Positions 5,164 to 43,899 of a stretch of 64,000 nt of DNA are shown here, piece after piece. Position 1 is the first letter of the stretch; each line of letters starts with the position of its first letter. Where the stretch lies: positions 12,896,001 to 12,960,000 of the forward strand of contig CM060734.1 in assembly GCA_030704615.1 (NCBI GenBank), given 5' to 3'. The DNA is from Takakia lepidozioides. Its lineage: Eukaryota; Plantae; Bryophyta. The notes under the pieces were generated by a model. It did not search any database, was not told the DNA's origin, and worked only from the letters and a program-made list of their open reading frames with translations. Position numbers and translations under genes: made by a program.

Positions 5164-7013
<1,850 letters not shown>

Positions 7014-11554: not shown

Positions 11555-14500
11555 TCATTCATCCTTTTGTCGGAGACTTAACCCTGTACCATGGCTACCA
11601 TGAACAGCCACATGCGAATATTTTTTGGTATCTATGAATAAGTTTATGTCAGAAGTTTTTGGATTAAAATGTGTTTCATTAAAACATAAAATATGAGCTG
11701 CTTGTAAGTTGTGATTTGCACATACATCTTCTCTATGTAATAACAACGATCTAGTATTTAAATGTTGTATAAGAACATGTGATTGTGTATATATGGTTAA
11801 AACTGGAATGATCAACTCCCATTTTGCTGTTGTTTTCAATCTTTGCATTTCTTCTACCACACCATTATCAACATGAAAATTTGATAATTGTAAATTTGAT
11901 AGGAGATACAAATTTTCTTTTTTACGTATTCGAGACAAAGCTGTATAACTTAAACCATGTTTATGTACTCATGTTGGATCAAACGCCAAATAGTCTAAAG
12001 TTAAACCTTATGAACAATGTATAGTTCGTGCATCTGCTACTTGAATAGGAAATTGTGTTCTTGTAATTATATGTGATGTATTGGATCCTATTTGAATTTC
12101 TTTTGTAATTGGTTGAATTGGAGTCCATAACTTATTTATCGTTGAGCTATATAAATGAATATTTTTTGCACGTGTAGCAACGCCAGATTTTGGATTATTA
12201 AATTGTATCCATATTAAAGGCGTTGAATCTGTTAACACTGAAGTATGTTTAAATATACCGTCTGCTGTGTTTACTAAACCATCATGTGTTGCATAGTTGC
12301 CTGCACATAACTCCACCAACATTTCTTCCTTCACACGAATGATTGTATGTAAGCTAGTTGTATTGGCTACATTATCTGAAAGCTTAAAAGTGGATGGACA
12401 TGTATCATTATGTTTATCAACAGCTTCAAAAATATATATACTTCCTTTAGTTGTTTCAAATGCTTTGTGATTATGAACTAACATAGATTTGTTTGTATAA
12501 TACAAATGTGGAAATGTTGGATTGTTAGGAGCAGGACGACAACATTGTCGATTTATAGTATCAATATCAAATTGAGTTGCGGTTGCAATTCGCAGTCGAT
12601 TCAAGATGGCAATGAATTCATTGTCTGATTGACGCATTACTTGATTAAGTTCGTAACATTTAATACAATCTTGCCAAAAACCAGGTACTATAGCATCAGG
12701 ACTTTCATTTTTCTTTTTGAAAACCCATGAATCTCGTACTGGCGGTGCTTGGTAGAAATCTCCAGTGATAATAACATCAATATTACCAAAGTAAAGAATT
12801 ATGAATTCGTTTTATTGATCTCAATCGTTGATCAGCAAACGCAAGCATCCTACTACCTACAAGAGATACTTCATCTAATACCATAAGTTGTAGTTCATCA
12901 ATTTTTTTTACTAATGTGTCTAATCGTTCAGAACCTAGCGATGACAAATCTTTGCAATTAAGAGGTATGCTTAGTCTTGAATGGATTGTTGTTCCATCTA
13001 TATTGAAAGCAGCCTTTCCAGTATATGCCATGAGAATTGATTTTTGTTTAAGGGGGTCAGATTGTGGATGTCTATTGTAAAATCTCAATAAACCTTGAAT
13101 AATAAGCAACAAAGTAAATGTTTTTCCGGTTCCTGCCCCCCCTGTTAAAAACATTTGCAAAGGTTTATTGGGAAACAAATATTTTCTATACATACAATCA
13201 TCGAAAATTGTGCGTTGTTCTATATTAAGTTTTCGTAGTTGTGCATAAAATTCTATTGTGGAAATAATGTTATCAGACGCAGAAGAAATATTCGCATCAG
13301 GCACTGTCGATAAACCAATTTTAGGGCGCAAATGAAATTCAGTAGCTATGTCATATGGTTCTATCCCAGTACTACTTATTAATGATTGTGGAATGGATTC
13401 TGCATCAACATCAGCATCAAGAAAGTTATTCATCCATATACTAATATCATTGATTTTGGCTAATTCGTGAGCATTTGTCTCTAACATACTCCAAGATGAT
13501 GTATTAGTATTTTCTATAGAAAACTTGTATATGAATTTATTACGTATTAATGAAATAGTTGATTCATGATTCATATACGCATCATGCCAAGTCTTATGGT
13601 TGTCTTTTTGAGATTCTTCATTTTTTATGAATTGATGAAAAAGTAAAAGTTGTTCTCGATAATAATTTTCAGAGTCTCAATGCTCATTGTAATGCACATA
13701 TCTAATGATATGAGATTTTTTACGACGCTTTATATTATTTTTTTCCATTGTATAATCTGCTACATATTCAATGAGACTTAAATGATTTAATGTAGTTGGG
13801 CGATCTATGTATTTATCGATAGCAGATGAACACTTTATATCTGTAGATTCAGGAGAGAGTCGTCGTAAATCTTTATCAGCTTTTAGCACAAATGCCCGTT
13901 CTTGAGACCGGTGATGTGTTTAGAAATTTAAAAGTTCTGGATGCATGATATAGTGGTATAGATAAGACAACGTATGCAACTAATTGAGCGGACATTTGCT
14001 GGGCATTCAAGAACACATTTCCCATCAACTTGTTCTGATTTACATTTTTCTATTATTGTACGAAATTCATTAGTAATAGTTTTATCTATCTTAGTTAAAT
14101 AAGAAGTACAATAACTTGCTGCAGCATAAGGATCGAGAATATATTGTGCATCAGTATTAGCTTGCCACAATGGGCCAGTGTGGATACCAAATGCATTAGT
14201 ACGGATATCTTTACATGCTCTTTTTAAAAATAAAGTAGGTTTTTGCAATCTAATACGCAACGCACATATATATATGTTTTTTTTTTTACCAATATGTAAT
14301 AATGAAAGGAAGTCATCAAATGAAATATCTATACCCATATCCATTTTATTTAACTCAGTAAATATTTGAGTTGATATCAATGTATAATGTTTTAAATCCT
14401 TTCTGTTTAATTCTTCAGTGAAAGGTTCCAAAATAGTAGTACAAATCATTGGGGGCAATGGATAGTGAAAACGACATATAGCTTGATTTTTTTTCCTACA

Positions 14501-16122
14501 TGTCCGTTTGTATCGATAGATTTGAGCTTCACGAAGACTAGGTGGAAGAACATTACTATCAGATGTTATATATTTATCCACAAAATCTTCAATTATCTTA
14601 TTTTGGTCTATTCCATAAATGGGTGCATTAGCTATCCACAACATTCCATGGTCATGTTCACTACCTCTACTTTGAAATTCCGTAACATAGAAAAAATCGC
14701 GTAGGGGTCCAAAAATGGTATGATCTTTTTTGCATAGATATCTAAAAGCACCCATTCGATGATCATAATATCGAGCATATGTAACGGGGTCGGATCGGAC
14801 TAACTCGGCAATGTGTTTAGTTTCTAAGTTTTGTATATTATCCGGAATTTCTAATTTTTCATAGTTGAGAGAATGAAGGGTTTCTAATAGTGGTGTCCAT
14901 TTACTTTCAGCACTTGTGAATGTGACAAAAAAAGTAGGGGGTCCTAATTGTCGAATCATTGCAAAAGCTTCTTTTCGAAGACGAGCCAAGTAATCGGGCG
15001 ATGTTCGTAATCGTTCTAGATCTCTATAGCCTAGATCTGAGCGCAATTGCTTATCCAAATTTGGTTTTTCAAGGAGATCACCTGCCTTTAATTGTCTACC
15101 ATGAAGTTTACCTTTACGAATACAAATCCAAGAAGATGAAGTAACACCATGAATTAATACTTTTATAGCTTTTAAAAAAAAAATCGGAATATGTCGTGCA
15201 AAATCATGGTTGCAATAGTTCCCACTGTGCAATATCTTGATAAGATAAAGCCGAACAATTTGATCGAGGATGTCCAAAAAACAAGCTAGGAAAATTTAAT
15301 TCTTCGCTATGAATATCTTGAAATAGACCTAATGGTTTGAAAATCTTGCCTAGGAGCTACCGTCAAAAGATCATCTTGAAATACTTGGATTTGTTCCGAA
15401 GTGAGAATATTTTCCACCAAAGTATCACTAGTAATATTTTCGGTAACTTCCTCAAAACTATCTCGAGTATTTTTGATAACTTCCTCATAACTATCTTCAT
15501 TAAGACAATGTTTTTGATTATTTTGTTCTGTTTGACAAGACATCGCAAATAAACCATACCATTCTGGACGAATAGTAACATGAGCTTCCATATATAATGG
15601 AGTAGTTAGGAGATCATGTAAAGCTAACATGATAAAATTTGGATGTACAGTTCCTGATAAATATGGATTTTTATATTCTAATCGACGTTTCAAAAGTAAT
15701 CCAATTGTAGCATCATCATGTGGCATGCGAGGTAGAACCGCCTGTGTATCATTAATATTTGCTGGAACATTAATTATGCTACCACGAATACCATATTGAG
15801 CATAACCTTGCAATTGATATATTGTGCAAAAGCCATACGTGGTGCAATTAATCTTTCTTCTAAGTGCATTTAGTTTTTGAACATTATATATAGGATTATT
15901 TAGATGAATATTGTTAGGTACTATATATTTAGGAGATTTTTTTTTATGAAGCATCAATTTACAACTTTGACATAGAAATAATTCTTGATTTTGTACTTTT
16001 GTCATATTAATAGAAATATACTCCTCTAATTTAGTCAACAAGCCTTTCGTGAGTTTAACAATTTGTTTTTTAAAAGATAACCGATGACAACACATACATG
16101 GATGCACATGCGTATCTAACAA
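11555..16122 (-). mobile_element. Helitron2/Helentron-type Rep-helicase-endonuclease ORF (pseudogenised)
   Basis: N-terminal Cys cluster and IRGSIINVPAN segment; Rep motif IRQLGPPTFFVTFT; HUH motif EFQSRGSEHDHGMLW; Y2 motif YAAASYCTSYLTK; PIF1 motifs GGAGTGKT, DEVSLV, GDFYQAPPV, MRQSD, RTQFPIQ...TIHCS*GLT, YTALSR; C-terminal EEP-like HLNTRSL...HILCFNETHF. Multiple stops and frameshifts. Confidence 0.93.
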
Positions 16123-16654
16123 TTTTTCTCTATATTGAGTATGATGAGTAGTAGATTTGGATTTGGATTTGGATTTGGGATATATCTACATAATTTTTTG
16201 TAGTTGTTTTCGCAATAATGACATATTCTAGACTTGAGAAGCCGTCACGAATGATGATTCCCTTCCCAAACGACTTGTATTCAGGGGCTGAGTTCGAAGA
16301 CGCCTCCCTATGCCCCATCCGATTCCAACTTGATTTTCTGCACTAGACGAGAATGATCTATTCTCGGAATGGTCGAATAGATCATCAGAATTGATACTGG
16401 AACGTGTGGTTGACGAAGTTGAAGATCTTGAACCATTCACATCTTGAACCAGTCCGATCTTGAACCATTTTGATTTTGAACCATTCTGACGAATGTTTGC
16501 TTTCTCTTTGAGAACCAGAGTCCTCAACTCATACTCGTAGGTCACTGAAAAATATCGAAGCCCACAAACAAAATAAAAAAAACGACCGGCTAATTGAGAA
16601 ACTAAAATAAAGAACAATACATACCTAAAAAAAGTGCATGTTACCATTCAGTAT

Positions 16655-17428
16655 TTATTTAACTTTGACATGAATGGCGAAGTACATACCAAGATAATCA
16701 GGCTGACTTGTCCACGAATGGAAAACAGAAGAATCCAAATATCGCCCATACCAAGACCATAGTGGGTGATTCCGATCTATCGTTGCGCGAGATGCTTTTG
16801 CAATGCTCTCACTCACATACTCAACAACACTGGATACTCCTATCATGTTTGAGATGAATGGCCACACTGCATCATTTATATTAGACAGCTTATTTTTTTA
16901 CCCATTAAAAATAAGAGGGAAATATCCAGTATTTGCAGGGTTTCCGAGTGATTTTGATGGTTCATCAACCACAAGAAGGATTTTCCCTTCCCTCGCAAAC
17001 GTTTTTCCAGGAAAACTAGCAAGAACGGTTTGAATATCCTTAATGAGATATCTCATCCCAGGCCTAATGTAGCCGGCTGTCGCATTGCAATGCTCATTGG
17101 ACCAAACAAAACAGAAGAGCTTCATCATATCAATGGGCACAAAACATTGTAGCATCTTAAGAACAATGTCTGTTTCAGAGCAAGACCAAATGGCGACATA
17201 AAAGTTTTCAAAAAGACGCCTCAGGAACTCCACCACTCCAGGCTGAGGAATGACAAAAGGAGTATCGGGGACCTTAATGGTCACATTTCTCCCTGAAAAT
17301 CTGTTTTTGAATATCTCTCTTCCGGTCGGAGGTGGTCGATAGCAAATGAGACCATTAACACTCAATATTATGAGCTTCATCCGCCTCTTTGGAGTAGAGG
17401 CATCCCTGTCCGAAGAAGCATAATTCTC
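16655..17428 (-). pseudogene. FCP1/NIF-family HAD phosphatase-like domain, copy 1
   Basis: KLIILSVNGLIC...PQPGVVEFLRRLFENFYVAIWSCS...FVWSNEHC...IKDI...LLVVDEPSKSLGNPANTGYFP. One in-frame stop at 16898-16900; the nucleophile Asp is replaced by Ser. Confidence 0.8.
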
Positions 17429-18989
17429 CTGAAATCAATGTAATTGAGATTAGTGCAGATAAAACACCTATGCAACCTCGACATTTATGTCGAGGTAAAT
17501 GCTTCCTTGAGATTCACTGAAGACAACTTGAATATCTCCACGACACTACAGAGTCTTTATGAGGATATACCTAATGGATAAATGAATCACAATGCTTCAG
17601 ACAAACATTAAAGAAAGATATGCAGTTACTACACCTTCTGAATCCCTCTTGATTGAGATTCTGCAGAACAAATTCTATACACTTACACAACGTGAACATA
17701 AACTAAATCCATGACGATGATGGTGTCATCTGGTCGTGGGAAGAAAATTCAAATATCATAAATTCCTTTTGTCCAACTGAAGAGAATGAATCTACAATCG
17801 TTAATCATCAGCGGACCAAATGAAAGCATCGTCCACATGGTCAATTGAATATACATTGATATGCAGATATATTACAAGAATCAATCGGTTACCTTCTGCA
17901 ACCCTCTTGACTGAAATTTTGTAGAACAAGTGTGGGAGTCGGTTGAGTTCTAAAGGGATAGTAAAACATCTGACGCAATCTTCACGTCTGAGCAAACCAT
18001 AAGCCTCTTACAAGTGGATGGAGATTTCTTCGAACACTCCGAAGTTTTCAGGCCAGGCGCGCGACATAAATCATCCACTTGTTTTTTCCTTTCAAAGATT
18101 TGGAGGTTGAGTGCACGAGGGGATGATATGAGGTCATTTGGAGATACATCCGGACTTGATATCTTCATATCCTGAATTGAACGTCAAATACTGAGATTAC
18201 GTTGGATTATAATGTAGGAGAAGACGTCGTTTCACTCCACCCAATCTTACCTGGGGTAAAACAAGATCATCAGAAAAAAGAAAAGACTGAATGAGGAAGA
18301 CAAAACAAAAAAAGTATAGGCAATAATTCACCTTGTTCCTCCTCAAGTGTCCATGTGTCCATCCATGATGTTGTGGGGTAAACGTTGGGATTTTCCTCCA
18401 GGGCAAGTCGTCCACTTGCTGTACTTTGTCAATACCTGAATGAGTTGTAATTGGACTGACGTTGTGTTCAATTGATTGATGATATCGCCCATCATCAGGC
18501 TTGTTAACCTCTTCAAGACAACGTTCCACCACAGCAAGAGAGATCTCTAATGGTTGACTGTCACTCTGTTGAGTGATAACCTTGTTTTCGCTCAAATCCT
18601 CCAACTGAGATCTAATAGACTCAAGTCTTGTGGAAACTCCATTGTCACATTCAATAACACGGTGTTCTTGCACATTTTGTACAGACTTTGAAACCTGTAA
18701 TAGACAGGACATGATCAAATGAGACTCAACCTCGATACATCCTCGACATTACTGTCGAAGTTAGTAGAAAGTACACTTAGTGGACAACACAGGTTCTATG
18801 ATGAAGCAACGCCATCAAACGATAAAACACTTAAAAGTTTTTAGCTACTTAAGTATCTAAGCATTCATACGGAACAACAACTATGTAAGCCTGCAAAACA
18901 TGCTAGATTGAACGTTTACTCAAAATTTGCATAAAGTGAATATGTACATTTATTTTACATGGGGTTCTAGAACCCCAAATTGTATATCC

Positions 18990-19680
18990 AATCATTCACA
19001 AATAAGATAATCGTTGCGAGAGCTCTTTAGAAAAGATCTAAGACTGTCATATTTAGGGTCAGAAAGGCTCTCGGGTCCAACCCCAATCCGGTTCTTAACA
19101 ACATAGTCTGGGACACATAATGGACTCTCCATCATCCCATCAAGAAACTTTTAAAGCACCAACAAGTAGCTGTTGTCGGTCTCAATTGACTCAAATGTCT
19201 TCAAGAATAAGCATGACCCTACAGGATTGAGTAGACATTTCAGAGGAGTATCATCAATCATCGAACTTTCCTCTCGTCTTCACCCATAGTCTCACAAGTG
19301 GCTTCAGAAACACGTTCGGGGAGTTTTTTAATCTATCGTTATAGTTTGGATGGACTTTGCTAGGACATGAAAGGCAATCTCTCCTGCGACATAATGAAGT
19401 CTAGTTGTGGTAATCCCTCCAACATGATATCAAGGACGGGTTTGAGGTTCCTTAGCTCCATGCAGCTCCAAATAACTAGGTGGAATCGCTCATGTAAATG
19501 CTTCCACACCTCTCGATATTTCTCCCGCCTAAAAATTTGCCTTCTAATGACCACAATAGGAACGTTGAAGTCGTTCTCGGAGTATTTAGGCACATGATTA
19601 TTAGATCATTGAGACCGGATGATTTTGCAGAGAACACCGTTCAGATCAAATATAATCAGACGAGATTTACCACTATCCAT
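18990..19680 (-). pseudogene. FCP1/NIF-family HAD phosphatase-like domain, copy 2
   Basis: ATG at 19680: MDSGKSRLIIFDLNGVLCK...HERFHLVIWSCMELRNL...FIMSQE...IDDTPLKCLLNPVGSCLFLKTF. Contains stops and frameshifts. Confidence 0.82.
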
Positions 19681-20169
19681 AGATAAAGACGTAGGTGGTG
19701 GTCGAATCTGTGGATGAATAGAAGAACAGAGTAAGGGATTGATTCAGCAGAAAATAAGGTGTCAGTCGAACATATAAAACTTCACCTCGACACTAATGTC
19801 GAGGTAATCTACCATCCGCGATAAAACCCGGAGTTGCATCCCAACAGTAAAAACAAAGGATATCACTGAAAAATGTGTTCATACGTGCGTTCGCAATCCT
19901 AGCACTTACTCCCTGTGGCTACATGGCCATACTTACCATGTTAACCACATATTCCATAACATTTGCCTTAACATAACATAACATTTGTCATAATATAAAG
20001 CATTTGCCAGTGTTTCAAATAAAGTCTTGTCGTTCCAATTGTGCACACGCACCCTTTCAATAAATCCTAGAATTCAATGGGTTAAGTTGTAAAAAAAGCT
20101 ATAGAGTGCAACCTGATTAGAAAACTCAAAACAAAGCAAGGAATATTGATTATAAATATAAGAATAAAG

Positions 20170-23100
20170 TCATACCTGCTTGTGAGCCTTTTGTGTTGTT
20201 TGTTGGGGACTCGTCACTTCTCCGATGGAATTGGTCGGTAACCTCGCCATTGAGGTCGATGTTCCCACAAAAGCTGTTGTTAGAGCAGCGTTCTTCACAG
20301 TCACATCTACTAGTCTGTTTGAAGCGTTGTTCTTCGAAGTGAGAAGTCTTAACGTTTTGGATTTTGTCATCTGCATCTCAACTCATGGGATTTGAATTAT
20401 GCTCTATTTAACAACAATTCGAAGACTCAAGTTTCTTGCTATAAAAATGACATGCGAATATCTTAAAACAATGGGAAAATCTCAGAACCATTTACACAAC
20501 CAGCTCTGTATCAGATATCACGTACATTTTTGTGGTCCAATTTGGTTTTCATCCTCCGCTCTCTGCTATGCCCCGCTATTGGGGATACTATGCCGATTGG
20601 AAACTCACCAGCAGCCGGCGTGAATGTGTCAGGCTCAGAATCATCAGCAATAGTGATTGATTCTGTCTCTATAGCTTGCTTATTTTGTACTTCCAGATTA
20701 TTGCTTCCAACACCAACATCTCTGAGACTCTCCACAATCGGACTCTCCAAAAGCACAGTCTCCACAACCCTATCCAAGTCCTCCATATTGGTCTCGTCAT
20801 TGAGCCACGTGCCCTCATTACCCTCATTATTACCCTCATCAGCCTCGTGAACTGCCTGCTCAACATGGTCATCTTTTTTTATTTCCTCACTCGTTGTTGT
20901 CAGGACCACCAGCTGATCCAACTGCTCCAACTGTTTCAAGCTTTTCAGCCCTCTGCTGTTCAACGTCATCATCATCCTCCTCCGGATCCTTGTCCTCAGT
21001 GGACTTGTCCGAGCTCCCACCACTCTCTTGACCATCAATATCATCTTCTGCTTCATCATCAACATGTGGTTCTTCCTCAATCTCCTCTTTGTCCGCAGCA
21101 TCCACTTCGTCCTCAGTGTCCTCACCCTCATCAGAGACCTCCGCAACCTTGTTTGTGTCAGAGGCACCGTCATGTTTTTCGGCATCTCATTCTTCCTGAA
21201 ACTTTATTCCTTTCTCCACTTCGAGGACCTTGAATGTTGTCTCCATCTTATCATTGCAATGTTCAACATGACTCTTCAGGTTTACATCCACAACACGAAC
21301 TCCGTGTGCCTACAAAAAGAACTGATCACTGTTATTTCCAAGTCAACAAAAATTCAAATGACGAAATCAATATAATAGTAGTGGCAGTTGACGTCGACGT
21401 TTGAGTCGTAACAACGAGGAGGTGATTATCCTTAGCTCACCTGAAGATGGTAGTTGAGCATAGGACCACCAAATATATTGAAGGTTGACATCCCCTCCTG
21501 ACAGAACTGACCGACGAGGATTTCATAAACCTAACTCCGTAGCTCGTGCTTGTACACTCTTAGCTCCATTTCTCTGTCACTGAGCTCAATTTATGTGCCA
21601 TGCAGCACGGGTTCCAAGGGCTTCTTGAAAAGAGTTGTCAGGACGTGTGCGTCTGGGGTCTTGAGCTGGTTCTCTATTGCAGGAAAGACATAGTTGAGGC
21701 ATAACGCAGGGTGTGCGGAAGCAGCAGAGGTGGTTGCGTATTTGCGCTCCTCTGATCCAGGGAGGTAGACTCCCTGAATAAGAATGTACTTCGTGGAACC
21801 CCCACCGTACCGCACGTAAGAATAAGATTTGATGATGAAGCTTGGGTTGAGAAGAACACGAATACGTTTGAAAAGACATTGCGCTTCCTAAAGGCAGACA
21901 GTATGGTGATGTAGTCCTTCCTCTCAAACACAAGATCCTCTTTGTCTCCAATTGTGTTCACAAAGACCATACCAATGTTTTGAAATTTATTCCTTCTGAA
22001 AAATGAAAGACGGCTAGCAGCGTTCGAGAACCTCCTCTTTGCACCCAGCATGACATAGTGGTCCTTGAATGACCGTGTCAAGTCGTCGTTGTAGGTCGCA
22101 TCTCCTCAATTTTCTTCTTCCAAGATAGTACATAGCTCCTGAATGGCTCCGGGATCGAGGGTGTCACCTTGTTCATATTGGCCTTGTCTGCCAGATATTC
22201 CGACGTTGTTTTGGACTGCATGGCCTTAAAAACTGTCTTAGTGATTTTGAGGTCATGTTTCACCTTTGTCCATTCCTCCTTCGTGTACGGTTCTGGATTG
22301 CTTTTGGACCGCTCTGCTCCTCCGAGTACCACCATGATGTCATCAACCACAAACCTTCGTGTTTTCATGTAATCAATGTAGTCGTTCATGCTCCTCAAGG
22401 TTTGATCCTTACCCTTATCTGGATTTCTAATGCTCACCCTCAAGTCCAGGATCCTATGTGCCACCTTCTTGATCTGTCGCTGGTTAAGCCCTTGAATCTT
22501 TTGGATAGCCGACTTGGTCAATGGAACCTCCTGAGAGTTGCATACAATCCCCATAGCATCAATGAGCTCCCCCTTGTCCCACTTTCAAAACACAGTCTCC
22601 CACAACTCCCAAACGTCCTCATCAGCATGGACCAATGCCAACGCTTCTTTCGAGGAGTTCTTCTCCAGTATAACCAGTGCCGCTTGCATAAACTCCTGGG
22701 ATGAAGAGCACAATTATTTTCAGACCCAACAAATTATCAGTGAGGGAATTCCAAAACCCCTATCTAGATACTCGTATGTACATAAATGAAGAAAATGACT
22801 ATTAGAATAATGTTTACCTTCCACAAGCCAGTCTCGTTCTTTTTTGCATTATCATTGTATTTCGACGGCTTCCCAATTGATGCATAAAAGCTTCTCAGGT
22901 GACCCAATTTCTCGCTAAAAGTCGTGTCAAACTTTTGTGCTTTGTTCGGATCATTTAGAAGCTTGGAGAGCTTCACCAGTTGCAAGTGCTCTTTTGACCA
23001 CACAATCCTGGCCGGCCATTCTCCAAAGTAGTTTACGAGCTGCTCGTCTGTATCCAAATCCTCAACAAGTTCCTACAGACACAATTCCATGTTGTAAGGA

Positions 23101-24274
23101 TTTAATTCATTCGACGTCGACATTGATGTCGACGTTCAATTGACTCGACGGTATCCTACTCCAATCTAATAGACGTCCATAGCATATAACGTCGACATGA
23201 ATGTCGAGGTTCTAGACCAATTGAAAATCTACTTGTTGAATTCTAGAGTCGAGAGACATAGATCTGGTTAGCGAGTACCTTGGCAGCCACGATCGTGTGT
23301 TGCCCTCCGATAATGAAAATTTCGTCGAAGCATCGTCGATCTCCGCTTATCTCGTTGGTATCTTCTCACATACATTGTCCTCATTCTCTGGATCAATTGG
23401 AGTGAGGTATACCGGATGTTGGGCATCCAGATGTCGGAGCTGCAGGAGTCTGGTTTTAACCTCATCTTTGTGCTTGAGGTTCAAGGGTCGGTAAACCATA
23501 TATTTAGGAGCAAGATTCATTCGCGATATCGGTATTTTGAAAGTTCTACTAAAACCGAATGGAAACATGTCTCCGTAGTATTCTACTAGATTTTTTGCCA
23601 GTTCTATTGACTTATCCTTGTCGTAAATGTCGGTTGTCTTGGGTCTCTTTACGTCGGGAGCAAGGGCTGGATCAATGGATTTCTTTGGTTTCCGCTTCTT
23701 TCAGGATGATCCAACACCTTCCTGATCATGTTCTGTTACTGATGACCCTGCCGTAGACTTACGTCTTCGTCTTGCTGGTGTTTCCGTTCTTTGTTCCATG
23801 TTTTCATTACCGGCTGCGAACAATACATCCTGAAAATGGCCCAAGGAGCGGATAAATGTTTTGGTATCCTGACCGATGTTGCTGTCTTCATTGAACTTGA
23901 ATCTTTTTTTGATTGATTGTTTCATGAGGTTCTTGCGGACAAAATTTCCAGATGCTACGTACCCGAATGTTTTTGGAACCCTTCCATCCTCAGCAACAAA
24001 GATCACCAGCATTGGAGACTGCATGTTCGTCTGGGTTTCCACTTCCTTCACGTATGCGTACTTGTGCTCTGTAACATTGCTTCCCGTCTTGTACTGAAAC
24101 CAGAGCTTGTGATCTGGAGGTTTCCCAGCGACTTCAATGCCTCATTCTTTTATGCTGCTATTCAATTTGTATATAGCTACATGCTCGGTCTTGTATCCCG
24201 GGGATCTGACAGATAAGAAATCCCCACAAATGTCTGCAGACATTCCGGGTTGGCAGTCTTCGGGGGCCTGAGAA
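20170..24274 (-). pseudogene. Multi-exon gene: ParB/Srx-like N-terminal domain + degenerate amino-methyltransferase-like domain + acidic tail
   Basis: FKIPISRMNLAPKYMVYRPLN...VYLTPID...FIIGGQHTIVAAK (ParB-like GxH motif, about 23280-23320); downstream GMVFVNTIG and ELRS*VYEILVGQFCQEGMSTFNIFGG (motif X/I-like, about 21440-21550); D/E-rich tail at 20500-21180; GT-AG introns. Confidence 0.55.
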
Positions 24275-24524
24275 CTGCAAAAGCCAGATGTCCAATATTT
24301 GATTAGGAAAACACCTCGACATTAATGTCGACGTCAGAAAATGTTTACGACGTGACCATGATATTTAATCACACTATCTTTTTCACATATAATGAATGAC
24401 AAACCAAATCCCACAAGGTTTGTAAACTCAAACACATTGAAAAATCTTTGTAAATATCCATTTTTTATTCACATCAGAGAGCAACTGAGATTTACAACAC
24501 ATTCCTCAACAATGAGACAACATT

Positions 24525-25011
24525 ACTCAAATGTCCAGAGACCAGTGTCTTCATCACAATAGATTCCGCCTAACCAAACAGGTTCCAAAAGATGACTCCT
24601 CTTTTGATCTTGACCTTGAGTTCCCGACAGCCCAAGAATCTCGGCACAGACATTGTCCATGGGTAGTTCATATTCTTTGGGGTATGACGTGCGTGGAACA
24701 TAAGTCTCTGGACTGTATGTTTCTGGACTTTATGTTTTTGGAACATAGGTAAGGTAGAATAACATGTATTCATATGGCCGTTGGCTATCTCGTTTAGAGG
24801 AACGAATGTACTATGGTGAGGTTGGCATATATTCAAGGGAGGACGGACAATATCCAGACGAGTCTGCTGCCTCTGAACCGGATGATGAGTAGGCTATTTC
24901 AGGTGGTTCAATGAAGTCCGGAAGCTCGTATTCGGGAGTTCCGGAAATTGGGTAGAAGCTCAATGAGTATTCGGTCGTTTCATCCTTTCTAGAGTAATCA
25001 CTCCTACACAA
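24525..25011 (-). pseudogene. Small Tyr-Ser-Pro-rich ORF of unknown function
   Basis: One reading frame with two stops: ...GYCPSSLEYMPTSP*YIRSSKR...TYVPKT*SPETYSPETYVPRTSYP... Confidence 0.4.
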
Positions 25012-26529
25012 CCACCTACGAACTGCCTCAGTTCACTCAAACACAAAATTAATTTGGTCCTACCTCTCTAAAAACATTGTTCCAAATTCTCGACGTCGAC
25101 ATAAATGTCAACGTCCATTCGGAGGAGACTAAGGAGTACTATTTTTTGGAACATTTCTTCTACTACCTATGTCGAATTCAATATGATCCTAAGCAAGGGA
25201 CAGAAGATTTTACATCAGGTCTAATGAACGTCGCCGCAAATGTCGAGGTTCCAGATAAATATGTCAAGAAATAGTGGGACATTTCGCCACGAAGACGCTA
25301 ATGTAAAAACCTCACCCAACCTAGCCTGCCGCATCTTACCTCAGTACAAGAATCCAAATTGACGTCAGTGAAACTCAATCTCATGAAAACCGAACCTAAC
25401 CCAACCTCTTTGAACCGCATTTCCCAACCTAACCTGACCTCATTAATCTCCACAACGTCGACACTCATGTCGAATGTTCCTGACATTAGCTTTTCATGAT
25501 TACGTGAACCAGGAAGTTGTTTGCTATATTTCTAGACTTTCTAGATATTAATGTCGTTCTACGACTCACTATCGATCGTGTACGCATATGGTCTTATGAT
25601 TTGTTGTCTTATATTTGGGAATTTGGAATGGTTACAAGTAGTGTTTCCATGGTACAAGTAGCGTTCAATTCATTTCCTATGCATTGTTTATGCATGTGCA
25701 GTGCATTACATTAGCAATTGAACTGCAACTGGATGTCATGTCGAAGTGCTTCGGTGTGTCTTCGAGGCTTCCAAATAAATGCTTCAAATGCCCTCTATCC
25801 ACTGATTGACCCTTCCACAAATACATCTATTAGTTTGAAAGGTATAAAAAGAGATCTAATAAGGACAATGGAAAACAAGGTAACCAATATGGTGGTAATG
25901 ACAAGAACTTCTGGTTGGCCCTAGTCTACTGTACCAAAGCCATTAGAAGACCTGAAAATAACTCGGGGCGGGAAGCCCGAACAACAAATAGAAGCTCACA
26001 GGGAAACGAAGATTGCAATTGCCGCAACCTGAAGATAATAAATTCCTTATCTAATTTAATCCCCTTGCCTCTCTCCCCTCTCCCTCCTTCTCTATCTCTT
26101 AGGACGGGAAGCCCGAACAGCAAATAGAAGCTAAGAGGAAAGGAGATGCAATTGTCATTTTGTTGGCAACTTTAAGACAATATTCAGTTTTCAATGCCTT
26201 ACCATCTCTCCCCTCTCTCTCTCCTTCTCTCTCTCTCTTAGGGCAAGAAACCCCAACAGCAAACACAAGGTGAAAGGAAAGTGAGATTGAAAATGAACCT
26301 AAAACATGCTCATTGCTCTCTCTCTCATCTTCCTCATTCTCTCTTAGGCCAGGAAACCTACCTGTGAAGTGATGCCCCACTCCTCCCCTATGCACCAGCC
26401 CGCCACTCCAACACTCCGCAGCTCCACTGCTCCAAGCTTTGTCCCTCTCTCTTGCAACCTCTCGGCTTGCAGCAGCTTCAACGTCCCTGCTCGCAGCAAA
26501 GGTGGTGGTTGAAGAGTTAGGGCAAACCC

Positions 26530-28400
26530 CCTTTGTTGGATCTGGCTAGATCCAACGGCATCAGCTAAATGAAAGACAAAATAAACAATGTCGACTGCTG
26601 GATCCAACAGCTTTCACAAAGCCCTGAAAAAAGAAACCCCCAAAAAAAAAAAAAACACCAGCGCGATGGCACGTGGCCATGTGGCGACGCGCCGAGCATG
26701 GGTCGGCGGGCGCCGCCACCCAATCAAAAAATTAAAATTAAAAAAAGAAAAAAAGAAAAAAGAAAAAACTTTCGCGTCTGGCCACATGCGGTCGCGCCGA
26801 GCGTGCGTCGGCGCCGCCACCAATAAAAATAAAAATAAAAGTAAAAACTGCCGCGCCTGGACACGTGGCGAGCGTGCGTCCCCAGCGCCGTCAAAGGCCA
26901 CCGCCACCCAAAAATAAAAACCAACGTCCATTGGTTTGTCGCACCTAGCCACGTGGCGACGCGCCGGCATGCGGCCTGGTGTGGGTCCACGAGGCCTGGC
27001 AAAGTCAGCGGGATCAGCCACCAAAAAAAAAATTAAAACAAAACAACAAAACCCAACGTCCGTTGGATCTCCCCGATCCAACGGCGGGGGTCTCTAAGAG
27101 ACCTAGCCCGAGCCGCCACCCCTGCGGTGACATTTAGGTGAGATCTCTACACCGTTGGATCTTCGAAATCCGATGGCTTTGGAAAACCCAAGCAGAAATG
27201 TAAAGTATATTAAAATATAAAATAAAACATTATTATAAATTCCAATAATACCTGAACGGACGGACGCTAGATCTTTGCGATCCAACGGCCTCCAGCCCAG
27301 GAGAAAAAAAACCCCAATATAAAACAAAACAAAATATAAAAAATAATAGACATTAGATTTCGATAACAAAAAATAAAAAAACAACTTGGCGCACTTCAAC
27401 ATTTGAATTGCTCCTTATTACTTTGTGTTCAATATATATACTATGAACGATGGATATACTTTAAAATCTCAAGTGTAGTCTGTTTGTATGATTGACAAAT
27501 CTGGGTCAAAAGGTTACAGGTTCGATCCCTGCGCCTTTTGTTTGCTTTGCCTTGTAGGACTAGATTTATAATTACTCTCATGCAGGTAATTTCGCGTTGT
27601 TTTGCACTTTCAAGTATAATAAAAAAATAGAAAGTAAATAATATCTAACTAGAAAATAAAATATAAAAATAGGGTAAAAATTAGCAGTAGGTCCTCCCAT
27701 CCGTTGGATCTCTGTGATCCAATGGTTTCCCAGCCTCCGAAAAAAAAGCCAAAAAAAAAAAAATCAGCTGCTGAGGGTTCCGTCGAACCTCGGTGCACAC
27801 GCCGAGGTCTTAACTATTGAGGTTCGACGTACACGTCGAGGTCTTAATTATTGAGCCCGCCACAAAAAATAACCCCAGCCGCCACTGAGGTGCACATTCA
27901 GGTAAAATAAAAGGTCGATAATAGATGATAACTAAGTGGAAAATAAACAAATAGTACATATGGAATTAAAAAGAAATAAATGGTCCTCCCATCCGTTCGA
28001 TCCAACGGCTCTCTGCTTCCCAAAAAAAAATTTAAAAAACAAAATAATAATTAGTTGCGGATGGTGACGTCGAACTTCGGCGCACACGTCGAGGTCTTTG
28101 CAATCAAATGACTTTCGCCCGACCCAAAAACAAAAGCCCAAAAAGAAAAATAAACGTGTTTGACCTAACCCTCCATGGTTGAGAGTTGGGTCAAATGACG
28201 CTCTCTCACAAAATAAAGGTAGGGTTTATGGCGGCGCCTGGGGGTTAGATCAAACATCACCGCCGTTGGATCGCGATCGAGATCTTGACGATCTTGAGAT
28301 TGAGATCTTGACGAGATCTTGACGATCGAACGGACGGTGTGCGGCTTAACTCCCCGATGCGCCGTATGTTATCCGTTGGATCGTCAAGATCGTTCGACGC
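26530..28400. repeat. Array of CCGTTGGATC-N(3-7)-GATCCAACGG hairpins in the divergent intergenic region
   Basis: Copies, some degenerate, near 26533, 27060, 27152, 27266, 27701, 27993, 28263 and 28374, interspersed with GC-rich blocks and A-tracts. Confidence 0.75.
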
Positions 28401-29547
28401 GTCGCGGGCTGTCTACGTCCGTTAGATTTGTGGTAGTGCTAATCAACAGTTGGAGCGCTTGATCCCTGTGGTGCATTCTCAATCATTTGCATTGGCGCAT
28501 TAACAGCGCCCTAACCACCGCCAGATCTGCTAGGAGTCCATATCCACGGCGGGAAGACTCCATCATTGTGCTCGTTTACGCACCTATGTGAGTGTACCAC
28601 GTACACCACACGCTTGGGGGCAGAGGTACATATATAATCTGTCATTCTGCACTCCTGCGTCTTTTCTTTCTCTCCTGAGTCTGTCCTCCTCAGTCTGTCC
28701 TCCTCAGTCTGTCATGTTTCATGTACCTTTGCATCATCTTTTGTACCTTTGCATCAGCCAATATTCTTATGAATATTTGCCTTAAGCTTTAGGGTTTACC
28801 AAAGCATCTGTTGTGTAGACACGAGTTCATCGTCACGTTATGTTCAAACACATGAGTGTTTGTTTTAGGTTTTAGAGACTTCAAGGTTTGCTTCATTTTT
28901 ATATTTTTTCCACCGTTACATACCTTAGTCTCCCTACCTTTTTACAGTCATCTTTATTTAACTATCATCCATGTCTCATCCAACTGAATGATTATTCATC
29001 TATTTTTTATTCATCTATAGTAACGTCGACATTAGTGTCAACGTCTGGCGGATTGCTGCTTCTTCAATTTTTTAAATACAAACTAAAGTTTCATCACTTG
29101 ATCTTCATTATGTCTCACATCACATCAAATATCTGAGAGTACCTACTAGTGCATCTGCATATGGGAGCATGTCTTCTTCCTCACTTGGTTTTTTTTCTAG
29201 GTCTTCATTAATATATTCATCTTATTTATTCCATGTCTCTTTTTTAGGATATCCAGTTACAACCGTTATTTTTTTCTATCTATCTCTATCCGTCAAGACT
29301 AGAGAACGTCGACATTCATGTTGACGTTTTATTCTTTATATCATTTCTTATTTTTCTTGGTCTTCATCGACATATCCACATGATATACTCTAATTCTCTT
29401 AACATCTCTTCATCCGTCGGAGTCTTCTTTCTCTCTATCTCCTAATTATGATATTTAGCTACAGTCCTTCTACTTTTCCTATTTATCTCTATCTGTAGAG
29501 ACTAAGGAACGTCGAACATTCATTTCGACGTTCTGTCCTTTCTCGAA

Positions 29548-32199
29548 ATGGATTCCTTATCATCTGGTCTCAAAATCTTCCTCTGTCACAAAACGTCGAG
29601 GGTTATAGTTGTAACTGACAACTGCCTGAATGTGACTGGTGAAGGTCAGTGTCATGGACGTTCATTGACCTCATCAACAATTAGTGTGATAATCACTACA
29701 TTTGAGAATGGCTATGGGACGATGCAACTGTCATATCCTCATATAGATGCAGACACATTAACTGAGGCTCTTGGGACACCTGTCATGTGGGATTTGTGTG
29801 ATATCTCTTTGGACTATCCTACCTCTAGTCCAGAATGTCCTTTCTCGTCCGAAGATGGAGATGGATCAGAAGAATCCGTGGATGGAGAAAATCCTCAGAG
29901 CCCTCTTGGAAGGAGTAATTGGAGAAATCGTATGTGTATCCTCTTAACGGAAAACGACGGTGACATCTACGAGGGAAGAATACACGCATGCATTCCGGAT
30001 GAGGTGGTACTTTGTGACAAACTCGGGGAGGACCATGTCGGTGTTCTCATTACCAGGGTGCTAGTAGGAGGATGTGGATCTCTCATGTCCATTGTCAAGT
30101 AGCCTTTTATTAGAACAAAATTCTTGCAAAATGGAAGGTTGCTTTCGGAATATTTACAAAATTTCTACAGCTCCGAGATGGCTAGTGAACCAGAGGATGA
30201 CGAGTGTGGTATAAGGAAGGCTCCTTACAGGCATTTTCGTAGATCCAAAAGAAGTGTTGCTTTGGATGAATCGAGGAAATCAAAAAAATTACTCTCAGAA
30301 AAGTCTGTGAGAGAGGTCAGTAGCAAACCATGTTATCAGCTTCGGTGTTGTCAATTTTTTAATTGGAAGAAGACGCTTGCTCTTCGTACCACATTTTGGG
30401 GATCCACCTTCGACAATAGACGAGAGCTGGGATTTGACATTCCGCGGAGACTACACAGAGTCGAGGGGTCAACTCGTCGAGCATACATTACTATTGAGGG
30501 AGTGGATATTTGCGAGAAGGCGTGGTGGACAATTCATGGAAATGGCAGGTCAACTTATATGGAGTACAAAACTAGACTCAGCAAAGAAGGGGTTATCTCT
30601 TCTCTGCATGGAAATTGTGGAATGAATCGACCCCGCCCAGAGACTGTTCAGGCTGAGGGGAACATATTGTTTATCATTAACGGGAACAATGATTTCATGC
30701 CACATAAGACGAGATGTATTGGTGATGGGCGCCGAGATACACTCCGTGTACTACCTCCAGAGATTAATTGGAAACGAGTTCGAGATGAGTCCAACGAGAT
30801 GAATATTCTTTCTCATCTACTTCTTCTTTTGGACCTCTTGGTTGAGCAAATAATTTTTTTACATCGATCGATCAATAGTTTTTATTTATCTACTACCTGT
30901 ATCAGGCTGATGGACGTACGCTCAATATTGGTTGGATTTTTGGCCAGCAGATCCCAACTTCGTTATAAGATCTTTGGCTAGAATTTTGAGACAATTGGAG
31001 AAAACAACATGTCGTGAATCAAGGGTCATTTTCGACAACCCCATGCAAACTGATTTCTTTGAAGTCATAATAAGAGGAAAATCCAGGTGTTTGGATGTTT
31101 GGAAGTCTTGTTCTGAAAAGGATAAGAAATGAGCGCTTCCATTACCACGAAGATTGTATCTACAAATGGACAATTGTGTCAAAGACAACAGGAACAGGTG
31201 GATGTTGGTGTTCTTATCACTGCTTACTGCAAGAGGGGTGTTCGAAGAAATTCAACTTTGTTTCCTTATGGTCAGCCACACGCATGAGGACATTGATGCT
31301 TATTTTAGTTACCTTTCAAAGAAATTGAAAAAGAACAACACATATGTTTTTTCCGATCTCATGAAAAATTTCATGGTATCTCAAGACCTACAGTTCATTG
31401 CACAAATAATTCAAGTTCCAGACTTCAAGGATTTTGTCGACAACTTTATTTTGGAGGGGAAGGAGGCTTTGGTTGGAGCTACGGAAATGCATATTTTTCG
31501 GTTTTTTGTTGATTTGGATGGCTGGCCTCTAATGCAATACAAAAAATCTGCAACAGATTCGGATTGGCTTCCCAAAAATAACAATGTCAAAATGTAGAAA
31601 GCAAAAGACGATGGTTCTCCAATGCTTCCAGTTGGATAGCCGAAACCGCTCCGTAAGAGACCTATTTGGGGAGATGGTGATGAAGCATTGGAGAAACAAT
31701 CTTGCATCAAGTCCGGTATTAAAAAATACATGGATTTTTGGAAAAAAAATGAACGTTCTTGGATGATCAATATGGAAATATCATGAAACAATATGATCAA
31801 TATTGGGCGGATATTCTTGAAGAACTTGACCTTCCGTTGGAGGAGCCAAATGACGAACTTATCGAAGGATTTTGGCCAGCAACAAAATGGGTCGAGCACC
31901 ACAGGAGAGATGGTGTTCATAGACAGTCTCAAGACGCATTGTCCAATAATGAAGATATTGTGGAACCGTATTGTGGGCCGAGATGTGACCGTCCAAAAAT
32001 ACCGTTAAATCCATTCAAGGATATTGAGAGAGGATTCTTTGTCCTTGTTCGCCTAAATGATACGGAGACTTTTCCTATTTGGATGGGAATGACAATATCG
32101 GATGTTGTACGAGATAGAGAAGATCGCAATTATAAAAAGCTTTTTGTGGAGTGGTGGAGACCGAAGAAAGGGGGCAATCCTACGGATGCAGATAGATAA
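29548..32199 (+). pseudogene. Sola1-like (GHTHEDID-type) DDE transposase with N-terminal Tnp1/En/Spm-like domains; internally deleted
   Basis: Cys-rich CYQLRCCQ...ICEKAWWTIHG...HGNCG, then WPADPNF...LPRRLYLQMDNCVKDNRNRWML...FEEIQLCFLMVSHTHEDIDAYFSYLSKKL. The segment expected to hold the first catalytic Asp appears to be missing around 30800-30900. Several stops. Confidence 0.78.
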
Positions 32200-32478
32200 A
32201 ACCGTCTACTCCCCACAGATCTACAAGAAAGATACGATCTATACTTCCAACCAAACACCATGACGTTTGTTCACAATTACCGCCATATTCTCGACCACTT
32301 CACCCTTTTTTTTCCCCAATCCTCACCCGTCGACAATACACCTACTCAGCACATCAATACTTTTGGACTTCCCCCCCTGTCGTTATCCCGCACTTTCCAA
32401 AGCCCTTCTAAAACTCAAAACCTTCCCTTCCTAGTGAGGTAGTGCATTTCAAACCTCCAGTTGCATCTGTCACTTCAA

Positions 32479-33132: not shown

Positions 33133-34520
33133 CACCATACCAGCCCTTATGTTTGCAGATGACTTCGCAGGCATAGGGGAGACTCCTTCCAATCTCCAGG
33201 AGTTGATTGATTGCGCGAAGAGATACTTTGACCTTTGGGGGCTAGAGGCTAACGTCAGTAAATGTGCAAGGGTGACATTCAACAACTGAGAAGAGGGAGA
33301 AAGTGATCTCAAGTGGTAGTGGGGTAGCCAAGAGATTCCGGTCCTCCCTTCCCACACATACCTAGGCATTGAGTTTTCCTCCAATTGTAATTGGGATGCA
33401 CATATTCAAAAAGTTGTTCAAACTGGCAAGCGCAAAGCGTTGGGTCTCACTAAATTTTCCACTGCAGAAGGATCAACTATGAGGTCAAGAAAACCATGCT
33501 TTGTCGAGTTATTAGACCTGCCTTGGACTACGCATCTGCAATATGGGTTGAAAACTCCAACCAGGCTATGTCTCTAGAATCCATTCAAGTGGGGGTGCTT
33601 AAGGACTGCATGTCAGCATGCTCCATAACAGCTAATGTGGCTGTTTGGGGTGAGTTTGGCATCCCTTCCTTAAGCTCCCGACGAGATGAATTCAAGGTCA
33701 GATGGTGGGGTCAACTGCAACATATGTTCAACACCAGATATCCTAAGTTAATCGACTCTATATCTTGGAAATAGGACCGCCCTATCAAACAGGCTAAGTC
33801 CTGGCAGAAGAGAGTATAAGAGATTCTCAAGGATCTGAATCTGGACCCGCAAATCTTGACCCTGCTGGATAAATCTGAATTAGAGGCTGTAGTGGCCAAA
33901 GCCATGTCTGTTGCCAAGAAATTGTCTGATGAAAATGAAGTTAAAGGCAGAAAACTTCCCTGAATTTGTTTCCACTCTGTGACATGGGGGAGGCCATCAT
34001 GGATGACCTCAAGGGTCTACCCACTATCAGCACTAGACTGAAATTTAAACTCAGAGCTGGAAGCCTATATTTGAATAGCAAACAGAAGCAGAGAGGAAAG
34101 GGAGAGTGCAATTGCCCGTTGTGTGGGCAACCGAAGACAATATTCATTTTTTATTCACTGTCCGGGGTATTCTCACCAAAGAGACGCTCTCCTCAAATCT
34201 ATCAAGGGAATTGTGCCGAAACCTCTGTTTACCAACTTTGAAAGTCTTGAGGCTGAGCCAAAAGCCCAGGTCCTTCTGGGGCCTAGTTATTCGGCAAACC
34301 ATACACAACAAATTGATGATTGTGTGAAGGGATTTCTAGAGGATATCTAGAAAACCCGGATCAATGTTTTATTTCAAGGTAAGTTTTACTACTGATGTCA
34401 ACCCCTGACAGAGGTAGGTTCTGTCCCTTTGCGTTCTGCTCAAACTGGGCGCGGGGTCAATGGCCACAAAGCTACGGCAAACAACGTCTTGTGAGTACAT
34501 TCTCTCTCTTACACACACAT
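33133..34520 (+). mobile_element. 5'-truncated LINE (RTEX/L2-like): RT C-terminus, CCHC finger, 3' UTR and (CA)n tail
   Basis: MFADDFAG...LEANVSKC...HTYLGIEF...IRPALDYASAIW...CPLCGQ...HFL.HC. The 3' end CAATGGCCACAAAGCTACGGC...GAGTAC is followed by a (CT)n(CA)n tail. Confidence 0.9.
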
Positions 34521-34526
34521 ACATTG

Positions 34527-34644
34527 TGGTGCAGTCATACAAATCTACTACACCAGATCCCATCAGTACTCTGGAAATTAAGCGCCTTTGGACCAGAATA
34601 GTACTAGGATGGTTGACCTCTACGGAAGTCTCGGTGCTGTACCC
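34527..34644 (+). rRNA. Full-length, diverged 5S rRNA-derived copy (pseudogene or SINE head)
   Basis: GGTGCAGTCATAC...CTACTACACCAGATCCCATCAGTACTCTG...TTAAGCGCCTTTGGACCAGAATAGTACTAGGATGGTTGACCTC...GGAAGTCTCGGTGCTGTACCC; 118 nt, collinear with bryophyte-type 5S rRNA but with multiple substitutions. Confidence 0.92.
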
Positions 34645-34720
34645 TTCATGGACCCTTTAGCCACAAGGTTGTGGTAAACGTCTTATGAGTACGTTCTGAC
34701 AGACAGACACACATACACAC
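34527..34720 (+). mobile_element. SINE3-like retroposon (5S head + LINE-derived 3' tail + CA tail)
   Basis: The 5S copy is followed by GCCACAAGGTTGTGGTAAACGTCTTATGAGTAC, homologous to the LINE 3' end, and then a CA-rich tail. CATTGTG occurs on both sides. Confidence 0.6.
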
Positions 34721-34726
34721 ATTGTG

Positions 34727-36050
34727 TATATCAAGGTAAGTCCCAGTACCGGAGTGAGCCCCTCACAAAGGTAGTGTCTGTTCACTTCAAACTGGGGTCG
34801 GGCTCTATTGCCACAAGGCTATGGTTAACAACGTCTTATGAGTACATTCTCTCTCTCACACACAAACACATTCTTATCACGGAGCGACCCTCTTTAGGAC
34901 CATCAAGACCATAGTCCATGCACCTTTGTTCATCAACTTTCAAAATTTCGAGGTTGAGCCCAAAGCCTTGCCAATTGCTGGGCAGCACACACAGCAGATT
35001 GATGCGTGAAGGGCTTTCTAGAGGAATTCTGGAAAACCCGAACTAATTGTTTATATCAAGGTAAATCCCACCACTAGAGTGAGCCCTATTTCCACTACCG
35101 TGCTCCGCCTTCGACTCGGTTTGCCTCATCCTTCGGCATTGGGCCTTCAGCAGTGCGTCTATCGTAAGCCCATCAATGACCTTGCCATCCAGCTCCTCCG
35201 CTACCTAAGCGATGGCGAGCGCGCTGCGTCTCATGATGTGGTTCGCGACGCGGTGGCATCTATTGCTCGGGAGGTTGGGTATCATGTATTGCGTGAGCAA
35301 TCTCATCTACAGCCCACGCTCACGTCCCACTTTACACGTCGCCATGTCGACATCGTTCTAGAGATGGTTTGCGTACTCTTGCGGATGTCGTTCTCGCCGA
35401 CCCTACTAGAGCGGATCTGCTACCTCGCGCAGCTACCACACTGGGCACGGCAGCCGTTGTTGCAGCTCAGGCCAAGGAGCGCGACTACAGAGATTCACCC
35501 CACCGACAGATTTCTTCCGCTGGCGGTCAAGATATTTGGCTCCTTGCACAAGCACTTCGACGATTTCCTTCAGACATGTGCACATCATGCGGCGCAGAGC
35601 GGGTCCACTGGCATTTCGCATGCCTCCGTCCTTGTGGGATACTATTGACAACTTGTTTTAGTGGCTCTGCAGAGAGCACAAACCATATCTATTTTGCATC
35701 GGGCTGATGTGGCTAGCTCCGCGTCATCTCATCTTCCGCCTATGCCTAACACTTTGCCTATCCCTTTGCCGATCTCCTCCAGGTTGTTGGTTGGGTGGGT
35801 CGTTCTGGTTGAGTAGCTTACTATAGCTTTTGTTTTCTTCCTCCAACTTCTTTGTTCCTCCCCCTCTTTTGGGAACTTCTCATCCTATGTACGTTTACCC
35901 ATTGTATATGTTGTAAATAAAGTCTTACATGGTTTCATCATCACAAAGGTAGTGTCTGTTCCCTCTTTTTCCGATCAAATGCGGGGTCTATGGGCACAAG
36001 GCTACGGCAAACAACATTTTTGAGTACGTTCTCACGCGCACACACAAACC
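34727..36050 (+). mobile_element. Two further head-to-tail LINE 3'-end copies (34727-34870; 34873-36050, the latter split by an insertion)
   Basis: Both carry TCAAGGTAA...GAGTGAGCCC(C)TCACAAAGGTAGTGTCTGTT...CACAAGGCTA(C/T)GG...GAGTAC plus a CA tail. Confidence 0.85.
35087..35940 (+). mobile_element. 3' end of a CRE/R2-like non-LTR retrotransposon with restriction-like endonuclease
   Basis: LRLRLGLPHP...GERAASHDVVRD...RRHVDIVL / RTLADVVLADPT...AAQAKERDY / FLPLAVKIFG, ending in a CATCA tail. It interrupts the host LINE tail exactly between GAGTGAGCCC and TCACAAAGG. Confidence 0.8.
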
Positions 36051-42924: not shown

Positions 42925-43173
42925 CAACCCAAAAAACTTTCAAGGCGAAGAAGCCTTGGCGGTAAGGCGGTGTGTGTGCAGGTGGTGGGGATTAAGGTGT
43001 CATCAACGACATCTTAATTCCCCGTACGTGTTGCCACATGACGATTCATGGAAAAACCAACAACCCCAAAACAATTCAACCGAAAAAAATTTCACCCAAA
43101 AGATAAATGGATGTATTCAGTACATTGAACAAAGTGGAGTCATTGGCAAAGAATTGAACTCCTTCATAATACC

Positions 43174-43873: not shown

Positions 43874-43899
43874 GGATGACTGCTACAACATTTATCCTT

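Follow-up and report, generated by a model that had tools for sequence, protein, structure and literature searches.

Two divergent genes in the genome of the moss Takakia lepidozioides, a transposase gene on the plus strand and, on the minus strand, a gene with putative ParB-like and methyltransferase (MTase)-like parts, raise the question of whether both belong to one mobile element and, if so, what such a cargo might do for a transposon. The genes lie in a stretch of 64,000 nucleotides (contig CM060734.1, positions 12,896,001 to 12,960,000), referred to here as the window, whose composition is that of land-plant-like repeat DNA with GT-AG introns. Our analysis indicates that the segment from 16218 to 32196 is very probably the remnant of a single decayed terminal inverted repeat (TIR) transposon of the Sola1 type, in which transposase and cargo reside together. 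The copy is dead and truncated at both sides, and it derives from a multicopy plant cut-and-paste transposon. Its features are compiled in Table 1.

Four observations show that cargo and transposase form one element and that the neighboring Helitron (approximately 11.5 to 16.2 kb of the window; Helitron_like_N, PIF1, and DUF6570 domains) is separate from it. The first is the range of a palindrome, ACSTCGACATNNATGTCGASGT, which the first-pass annotation of this DNA had overlooked. Allowing up to 4 mismatches, 13 copies were detected in the remnant (16662 to 29327) and none in the other 48 kb, as compared with a mean of 0.06 in shuffled sequences; the consensus was built from the counted copies themselves, 4 of which match it exactly. 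The copies, at 16662, 17475, 18740, 19784, 20241, 23114, 23189, 24313, 25093, 25228, 25455, 29023, and 29306, are located in predicted introns of the cargo and of two FCP1-like genes and upstream of the transposase, and only that at 20241 is perhaps exonic. Near 29510 there is also a gapped copy, and weaker ones occur at 27787 to 28095. A motif specific to the element is thus enriched in the noncoding DNA of the element, as has been described for VANC-type systems. Second, the GC content steps from 0.30-0.33 to 0.38-0.45 (about 0.32 to 0.40) at the Helitron junction near 16.2 kb. Third, sequencing contigs from four runs that cover 14400 to 20300 represent many divergent copies, and in 3 runs (2 studies) a contig departs from the window at 16218 into another sequence, which is nearly the same in the three runs, so that this border with the Helitron is not a general feature. 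The sequence that continues past 16218 in these contigs is not present anywhere in the window, and it may correspond to a single locus or to the family's own continuation. The fourth observation concerns the termini shared by the relatives of the element, as detailed below.

It is therefore highly improbable that the cassette is owned by the Helitron or that it is an independent neighbor of the transposase. The Helitron is indeed found directly downstream on the same strand, both in the window and in one relative (L063); however, it contains no palindromes, it lies beyond the GC step and the point where other copies depart, and in L063 it is situated past the end of the family homology. The terminus found on the cargo side also occurs on the transposase side. 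Helitron ownership of the cargo was rejected on these grounds, and of the two possible carriers that had been considered initially, it is the Sola transposase with which the cargo travels. A search for a TIR pair between the ends of the window copy, the true ends of which are missing, did not return any. Past 32.2 kb, LINE-like (long interspersed nuclear element) remnants were observed, followed by pieces that by eye resemble Harbinger, Mutator-like element (MULE), and CACTA sequences. The largest matches of the RNA-labelled run X6 were to 16224-16515, which contains a small duplication with a different continuation after 16515 and may be a small repeat in its own right or part of the subterminal region.

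To place this copy in a family, we used the ParB-like piece as query, which retrieved five and then 43 homologous fragments with 22 to 50% identity. A scan of JGI metagenomes yielded 67 loci which, merged with the earlier ones, correspond to 49 independent loci; judged by the sample series, most of them are presumably peat-moss DNA. The relatives are collinear with the window over the ParB-like exon, exon 2, the helical region, the C-terminal domain, and the FCP1-like genes. The latter lie downstream, in the same orientation, in 21 of the 28 independent loci that have at least 4.5 kb of downstream flank. A transposase that shares 52 to 62% identity with the window piece was present in four independent loci (L024, L052, L051, and L018). 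It is divergent and 6.5 to 8 kb upstream in L024 and L052, as in the window, on the same strand in L051, and convergent in L018; most long loci contained no transposase within 10 kb. In seven loci, the family homology ends abruptly at the terminus AATTAATTAAATATGTGTT, approximately 8 kb past the ParB exon on its downstream side. This terminus, which comprises 19 or more bp, was found in inverted orientation on the far side of the L024 transposase, and it also follows the transposase of L051, whereas both ends were never seen together in one contig. Transposase and cargo are thus enclosed by the same inverted ends in this moss-associated family, and the order of the unit is terminus, transposase (divergent), ParB-like/MTase-like gene, FCP1-like genes, and terminus. 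Sola1 elements are expected to generate a 4-bp target site duplication with a preference for AWWT (PMC3845634); the DNA next to the relatives' termini is A/T-rich and mostly reads AWW, with no locus that has both ends.

The moss-associated family does not share the palindrome of the window. There was no ACSTCGACATNNATGTCGASGT match in the moss-associated loci, and the five single matches in viral contigs are probably due to chance. Its loci carry a separate 18-bp palindrome, ATYTRGTGGCCACYARAT, which is arrayed close to the cargo gene on both of its sides and is concentrated 0.5 to 2 kb upstream and 2.5 to 3.5 kb downstream of the ParB exon, not at the termini. The family (L009, 2738-3933 and 7392-7640; L024, 102; L038, 17768) has palindrome arrays of its own, a terminus that could be mapped, and as many as three FCP1-like genes, and might be curated as a giant Sola1 family.

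Table 1. Features of the Sola1-type remnant, in window coordinates
Feature	Positions	Strand	Basis and remarks
Sola1-type TIR DNA transposon remnant	16218..32196	.	Both true ends absent; delimited by palindrome range, divergence at 16218, transposase cut at ~32196, and relatives' termini
Dispersed 22-bp palindrome ACSTCGACATNNATGTCGASGT	16662..29530	.	Mostly in predicted introns and intergenic DNA
FCP1/NIF-like gene B	16898..17431	-	Motif SVNGLI, first Asp lost; Pfam NIF E 1.1e-5 (16901-17380)
FCP1/NIF-like gene A	19050..19743	-	Motif DLNGVL; interrupted by stops; Pfam NIF E 0.027 (19363-19605)
Acidic, low-complexity cargo tail exon(s)	20170..21310	-	Predicted
Large cargo exon: helical region, then amino-MTase-like domain	21438..22695	-	MTase-like part ~22100-21438; degenerate motifs IV and I; stops and frameshifts
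Cargo exon 2	22818..23074	-	Conserved in relatives
Cargo exon with N-terminal region and ParB/DndB-like domain	23276..24277	-	ParB/DndB-like part ~23625-23276; GGQHT in place of GxxR; frameshift near 23340
Y/S/P-rich coding-like exon, loosely similar to the RNA polymerase II C-terminal domain (CTD)	24490..25010	-	Predicted
Hairpin-rich spacer, CCGTTGGATC..GATCCAACGG family and others	26535..28420	.	Between the divergent genes
Sola1-type DDD transposase (DUF7869), dead	29548..32196	+	DUF7869 match; comparison with relatives

The transposase piece at 31154-31594 corresponds to DUF7869 (E 1.8e-33). DUF7869 and the GHTH motif are taken here as probable marks of Sola1. The first-pass annotation had recognized a GHTHEDID-type transposase; the piece is real, although the motif in the window is SHTHEDID, the G being found in the moss-associated relatives. 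The DNC and GHTHEDID blocks were identified, whereas the first Asp block occurs in the relatives only: a deletion of approximately 420 nt near 30810-30900, as compared with the moss-associated sequences, has removed it from the window. This deletion, the presence of stops, and the loss of the C terminus, the gene ending ahead of the conserved C-terminal block, show that the transposase is dead, and the deleted blocks were not found elsewhere in the window. The first piece (29548-30099) would belong to the same gene. The hairpin array noted earlier between the two genes consists of short CCGTTGGATC-family hairpins, and this spacer is probably the promoter region.

The cargo gene on the minus strand is spliced and has conserved exons, intron calls being based on GT-AG sites and collinearity with the relatives, not on transcripts. 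The multi-exon gene described initially was recovered, but 24274-24277, taken as its start, is a splice acceptor, and there is an extra coding-like exon upstream (Table 1). This exon may open the cargo gene at its 5' end or form a small gene of its own. It holds short repeats such as SPETYSPETYVP, and the same element has two FCP1-like (CTD phosphatase-like) genes. The FIIGGQHT motif was located at 23323-23300 (minus strand) and is reached by a frameshift from the ParB-like frame (23700-23350). This frameshift is specific to the window copy, since the homologues P0003, P0007, and P0016 read across it in one frame.

The identification of the ParB-like domain, which is a prediction from sequence, is weakly supported. 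When aligned to seven phage ParB domains, a profile of the domain matched at the GxHxR motif (P 0.027), scoring higher than each of 40 column shuffles, and the closest Atlas feature neighbors of the piece were DndB and DUF6551 (0.82 to 0.88, with DndB at 0.88), which we consider a lead only. The motif order of ParB/Srx/DndB proteins (strand, P, R, helix, PI/PV strand, GxxR helix) fits by eye; the libraries of hidden Markov models gave no match. The arginine of the ParB CTPase GxxR motif is absent in the window and in all relatives, which have GGQHT, GGQHI, or SGQHS. A homologue search with the helical piece gave nothing, a tblastn search of phages and plasmids gave nothing meaningful, and a cluster look-up for the cargo returned fragments only; with the length filter applied and the frames broken, no intact protein of full length was retrieved. 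The library searches used single stop-free cargo pieces as queries, and the scripts translated each exon separately in one frame, writing X for a stop.

The C-terminal domain is conserved within the family, because its two pieces in the window took the top two ranks of all window segments, and in the correct order, when scored with a profile of the family C terminus. The ELR segment reported previously is present as YKHELRS-stop-VYEILVGQFCQEGMSTFNIFGG at approximately 21555-21460 (minus strand); it ends in NIFGG and is interrupted by an internal stop. The predicted order of strands and helices of the domain fits one half of a Rossmann MTase. Structural comparisons were made with a model of the C-terminal domain of the relative L014 (pLDDT, the predicted local distance difference test, of 46); an earlier fold with a pLDDT of 40 was not used. 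A Foldseek search with this model returned mainly S-adenosylmethionine (SAM)-dependent MTases in the top rows (best E 0.05), and the top row of the Atlas structure search was N6_N4_Mtase (TM 0.36, residues 68-237). For the MTase-like half, the Atlas feature search had no usable match, and the L014 domain used as homologue query retrieved only fragments of the same family that lack Pfam labels. Given the structural matches, the motif order, and an algal precedent, we consider the MTase origin of the domain likely rather than demonstrated. The MTase fold proposed for the cargo is suggestive only, with weak structural matches in its favor and negative sequence tests against it.

These data also bear on whether the cargo works as an N4-cytosine or N6-adenine MTase and marks the DNA of its own element. 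Such an activity has been predicted for the algal element Sola1-1_Ec32 (PMC12477816), and the Foldseek and Atlas matches hint at the corresponding fold, but neither the catalytic (D/N/S)PP(Y/F) motif nor the SAM-binding FxGxG motif was present in the window or in approximately 28 relatives, making this explanation very unlikely. At the position of motif IV, the window has VFVNTI and the relatives FSTTN (STTN/VNTI in the family), and at that of motif I, NIFGG and IFGGG, respectively. Intact catalytic activity of the window copy was rejected. The earlier designation of the cargo as "chromatin-modifying" is doubtful, since the catalytic motifs are degenerate in every relative seen.

The two FCP1-like genes proposed in the first-pass annotation are real, as both belong to the Pfam NIF domain (Table 1). 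They, too, lack the catalytic signature: DxDx(T/V) is absent from the window (DLNGVL and SVNGLI) and from the relatives (DLKGVL, NLKVVF, and DLNASL). Degenerate motifs are thus common to all relatives throughout the cargo, namely, GGQH[T/I], STTN/VNTI, IFGGG, and DLNG/DLKG/SVNG, and these common substitutions argue that the degeneracy predates insertion. Between the FCP1-like genes, 17890-18718 (minus strand) contains more pieces of spliced open reading frames, which had no Pfam match and no counterpart in the relatives.

Considering the linkage, the family-specific palindromes, and the loss of motifs, we tentatively propose, at slightly less than an even chance for the mechanism as a whole, that the cargo is a self-recognition and anti-silencing kit of pseudo-enzymes. 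The ParB-like protein would bind the family palindrome, probably as a dimer, like ParB on parS. The MTase-fold domain, having lost its catalytic motif, would act by binding DNA or protein, and would shield or remodel the sites without methylating them. The FCP1-like proteins would be recruited factors or phospho-CTD binders that favor RNA polymerase II transcription from the divergent promoter. As a result, copies of the family could remain expressed and mobile, as VANC achieves for VANDAL. To our knowledge, VANDAL/VANC is the only system known to bind and de-silence its own transposon. A more far-reaching version appears rather unlikely, namely, that land-plant Sola1 elements possess a complete kit consisting of a ParB-derived clamp on a family-private parS-like palindrome, a dead MTase shield, and FCP1-like and CTD-like proteins that target the phosphorylation of RNA polymerase II at the element, with protein and palindrome changing together, and that it constitutes a second, independent VANC-like system of bacterial origin.

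The distribution of the palindromes might also reflect a helper function in transposition, in which the ParB-like protein, or the transposase, binds internal palindromes, compacts the 16- to 18-kb element, and joins its ends. ParB proteins generally bridge and condense DNA, the element is large, and its palindromes are distributed along its length. In the moss-associated family, however, the sites gather around the cargo gene and its promoter rather than at the termini, and a helper role leaves the retained FCP1-like genes unexplained; we regard it as unlikely. About as unlikely is a scenario in which the cargo genes are long-standing passengers that serve some other purpose or none, the C-terminal domain is not derived from an MTase, and the palindromes arose by internal duplication. 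The negative outcome of all MTase sequence-profile tests and the marginal ParB support are in line with this possibility, but two distant plant families with diverged DNA and different palindromes still share gene order and exon structure, at 25 to 35% identity between their proteins, which indicates selection at the level of the element.

Several results weigh against an anti-silencing kit derived from ParB and an MTase. Searches of Pfam, PHROG, NCBIfam, and PDB sequences with the cargo pieces and their relatives matched neither domain, and the MTase-like profile scored no better than shuffles against 11 beta-class MTases. The L014 model is of low confidence and represents a relative's sequence, not that of the window, and a wide structural search with it gave nothing above Z 5.1, a value obtained with a designed protein. 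All relatives seen are decayed copies, so that some of the degeneracy could have arisen after insertion. The transposase is divergent in only 2 of the 21 relatives with a long upstream flank, and the two families compared are too few to establish protein-palindrome coevolution. Finally, the cargo was found in none of the RNA runs examined, which does not imply that it is silent.

The first-pass annotation had also compared the cargo with an MTase-like gene at 49 to 52 kb, inferring the same architecture in two superfamilies and the exchange of a module between them. The layout is alike, but our results did not support the view that the module is the same. The 49-52 kb gene has better motifs than the cargo (LLDIPD and ILDLTCGTG, by eye) and weak NCBIfam methyltransferase matches; it has no ParB-like part within the window, adjoins a different repeat array, and shows no detectable similarity to the cargo. 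Identity of the cargo with this module was thus rejected, and module exchange is unsupported. The gene is encoded on the minus strand of a MULE-like element (49037-57130) with arrays of a GAAATTCGGCGCC unit, and this unit was noted at 51426-53738, 57070-57230, and 63650-63830. As this unit recurs near 63.7 kb beside CACTA-like open reading frames, two superfamilies may share the repeat. Elsewhere in the window, we noted a tandem array at 42600-45150 (periods of 166 to 275, palindromic core GTGTCGTCAACGACATC) that adjoins a SWIM-like open reading frame (43174-43563), a direct duplication of ~580-bp units with ~80% identity (47441-48804), and an MCM-type helicase exon among repeats (6324-6665, minus strand), which is either a host gene or a captured fragment. 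Copies of a dispersed LINE 3' end or SINE-like (short interspersed nuclear element) repeat that ends in a CT/CA microsatellite are located at 34183-34870, 6024-6138, and 46557-46831.

In comparison with known systems, the element appears to be a land-plant variant of a known layout, for which a function was proposed in algae in 2025 without experimental test; the literature searched, in which subscription papers are thinly covered, contained no description of such an element in a land plant. The closest counterpart by layout is Sola1-1_Ec32 of Ectocarpus, a giant Sola1 element of 21.5 kb for which self-binding and self-modification were proposed; its accessory gene, opposite in strand to the transposase, encodes a ParB-like part fused to an N4C/N6A methyltransferase domain (PMC12477816, Genome Biol 2025). 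The window element differs in its land-plant host, its two additional FCP1-like genes and CTD-like exon, its degenerate MTase motifs, and its dispersed family-specific palindromes, a word that is absent from that article. In the red alga Bostrychia, the accessory genes PAG2/PAG3 of Plavaka elements move among transposable element superfamilies, and a ParB-like accessory protein beside inverted-repeat arrays was likewise proposed to bind its own element (10.1101/2025.02.11.637652). There, however, the transposase is of the EnSpm/Plavaka type, ParB is fused to a 2OG oxygenase, and a methylase-SET fusion is encoded by a separate gene. Phage ParB-MTase fusions (ParB-terminase loci, PMC4738411; Javan369_0028; PhiCh1 M.PhiCh1-I) share the order of ParB-like domain, helical linker, and beta-class amino-MTase, but have intact GxxR, DPPY, and FxGxG motifs, a length of ~420 amino acids, and no introns, and they resemble the plant protein at the limit of detection. 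VANDAL/VANC (PMC5735166) also combines a transposon-encoded protein with a family-specific motif in noncoding regions, including introns, but it belongs to the MULE superfamily, VANC is unrelated to ParB, its motif is short, nonpalindromic, and arranged in tandem arrays, and its function has been shown experimentally. With the window locus and its moss-associated relatives, two families now have a named candidate site each, the gene order is seen to be conserved, and the termini of one family are mapped, so that a comparison of cross-binding between the families is straightforward. The family-wide loss of catalytic motifs suggests that the idea of self-methylation, as published for the algal element, may not hold in plants.

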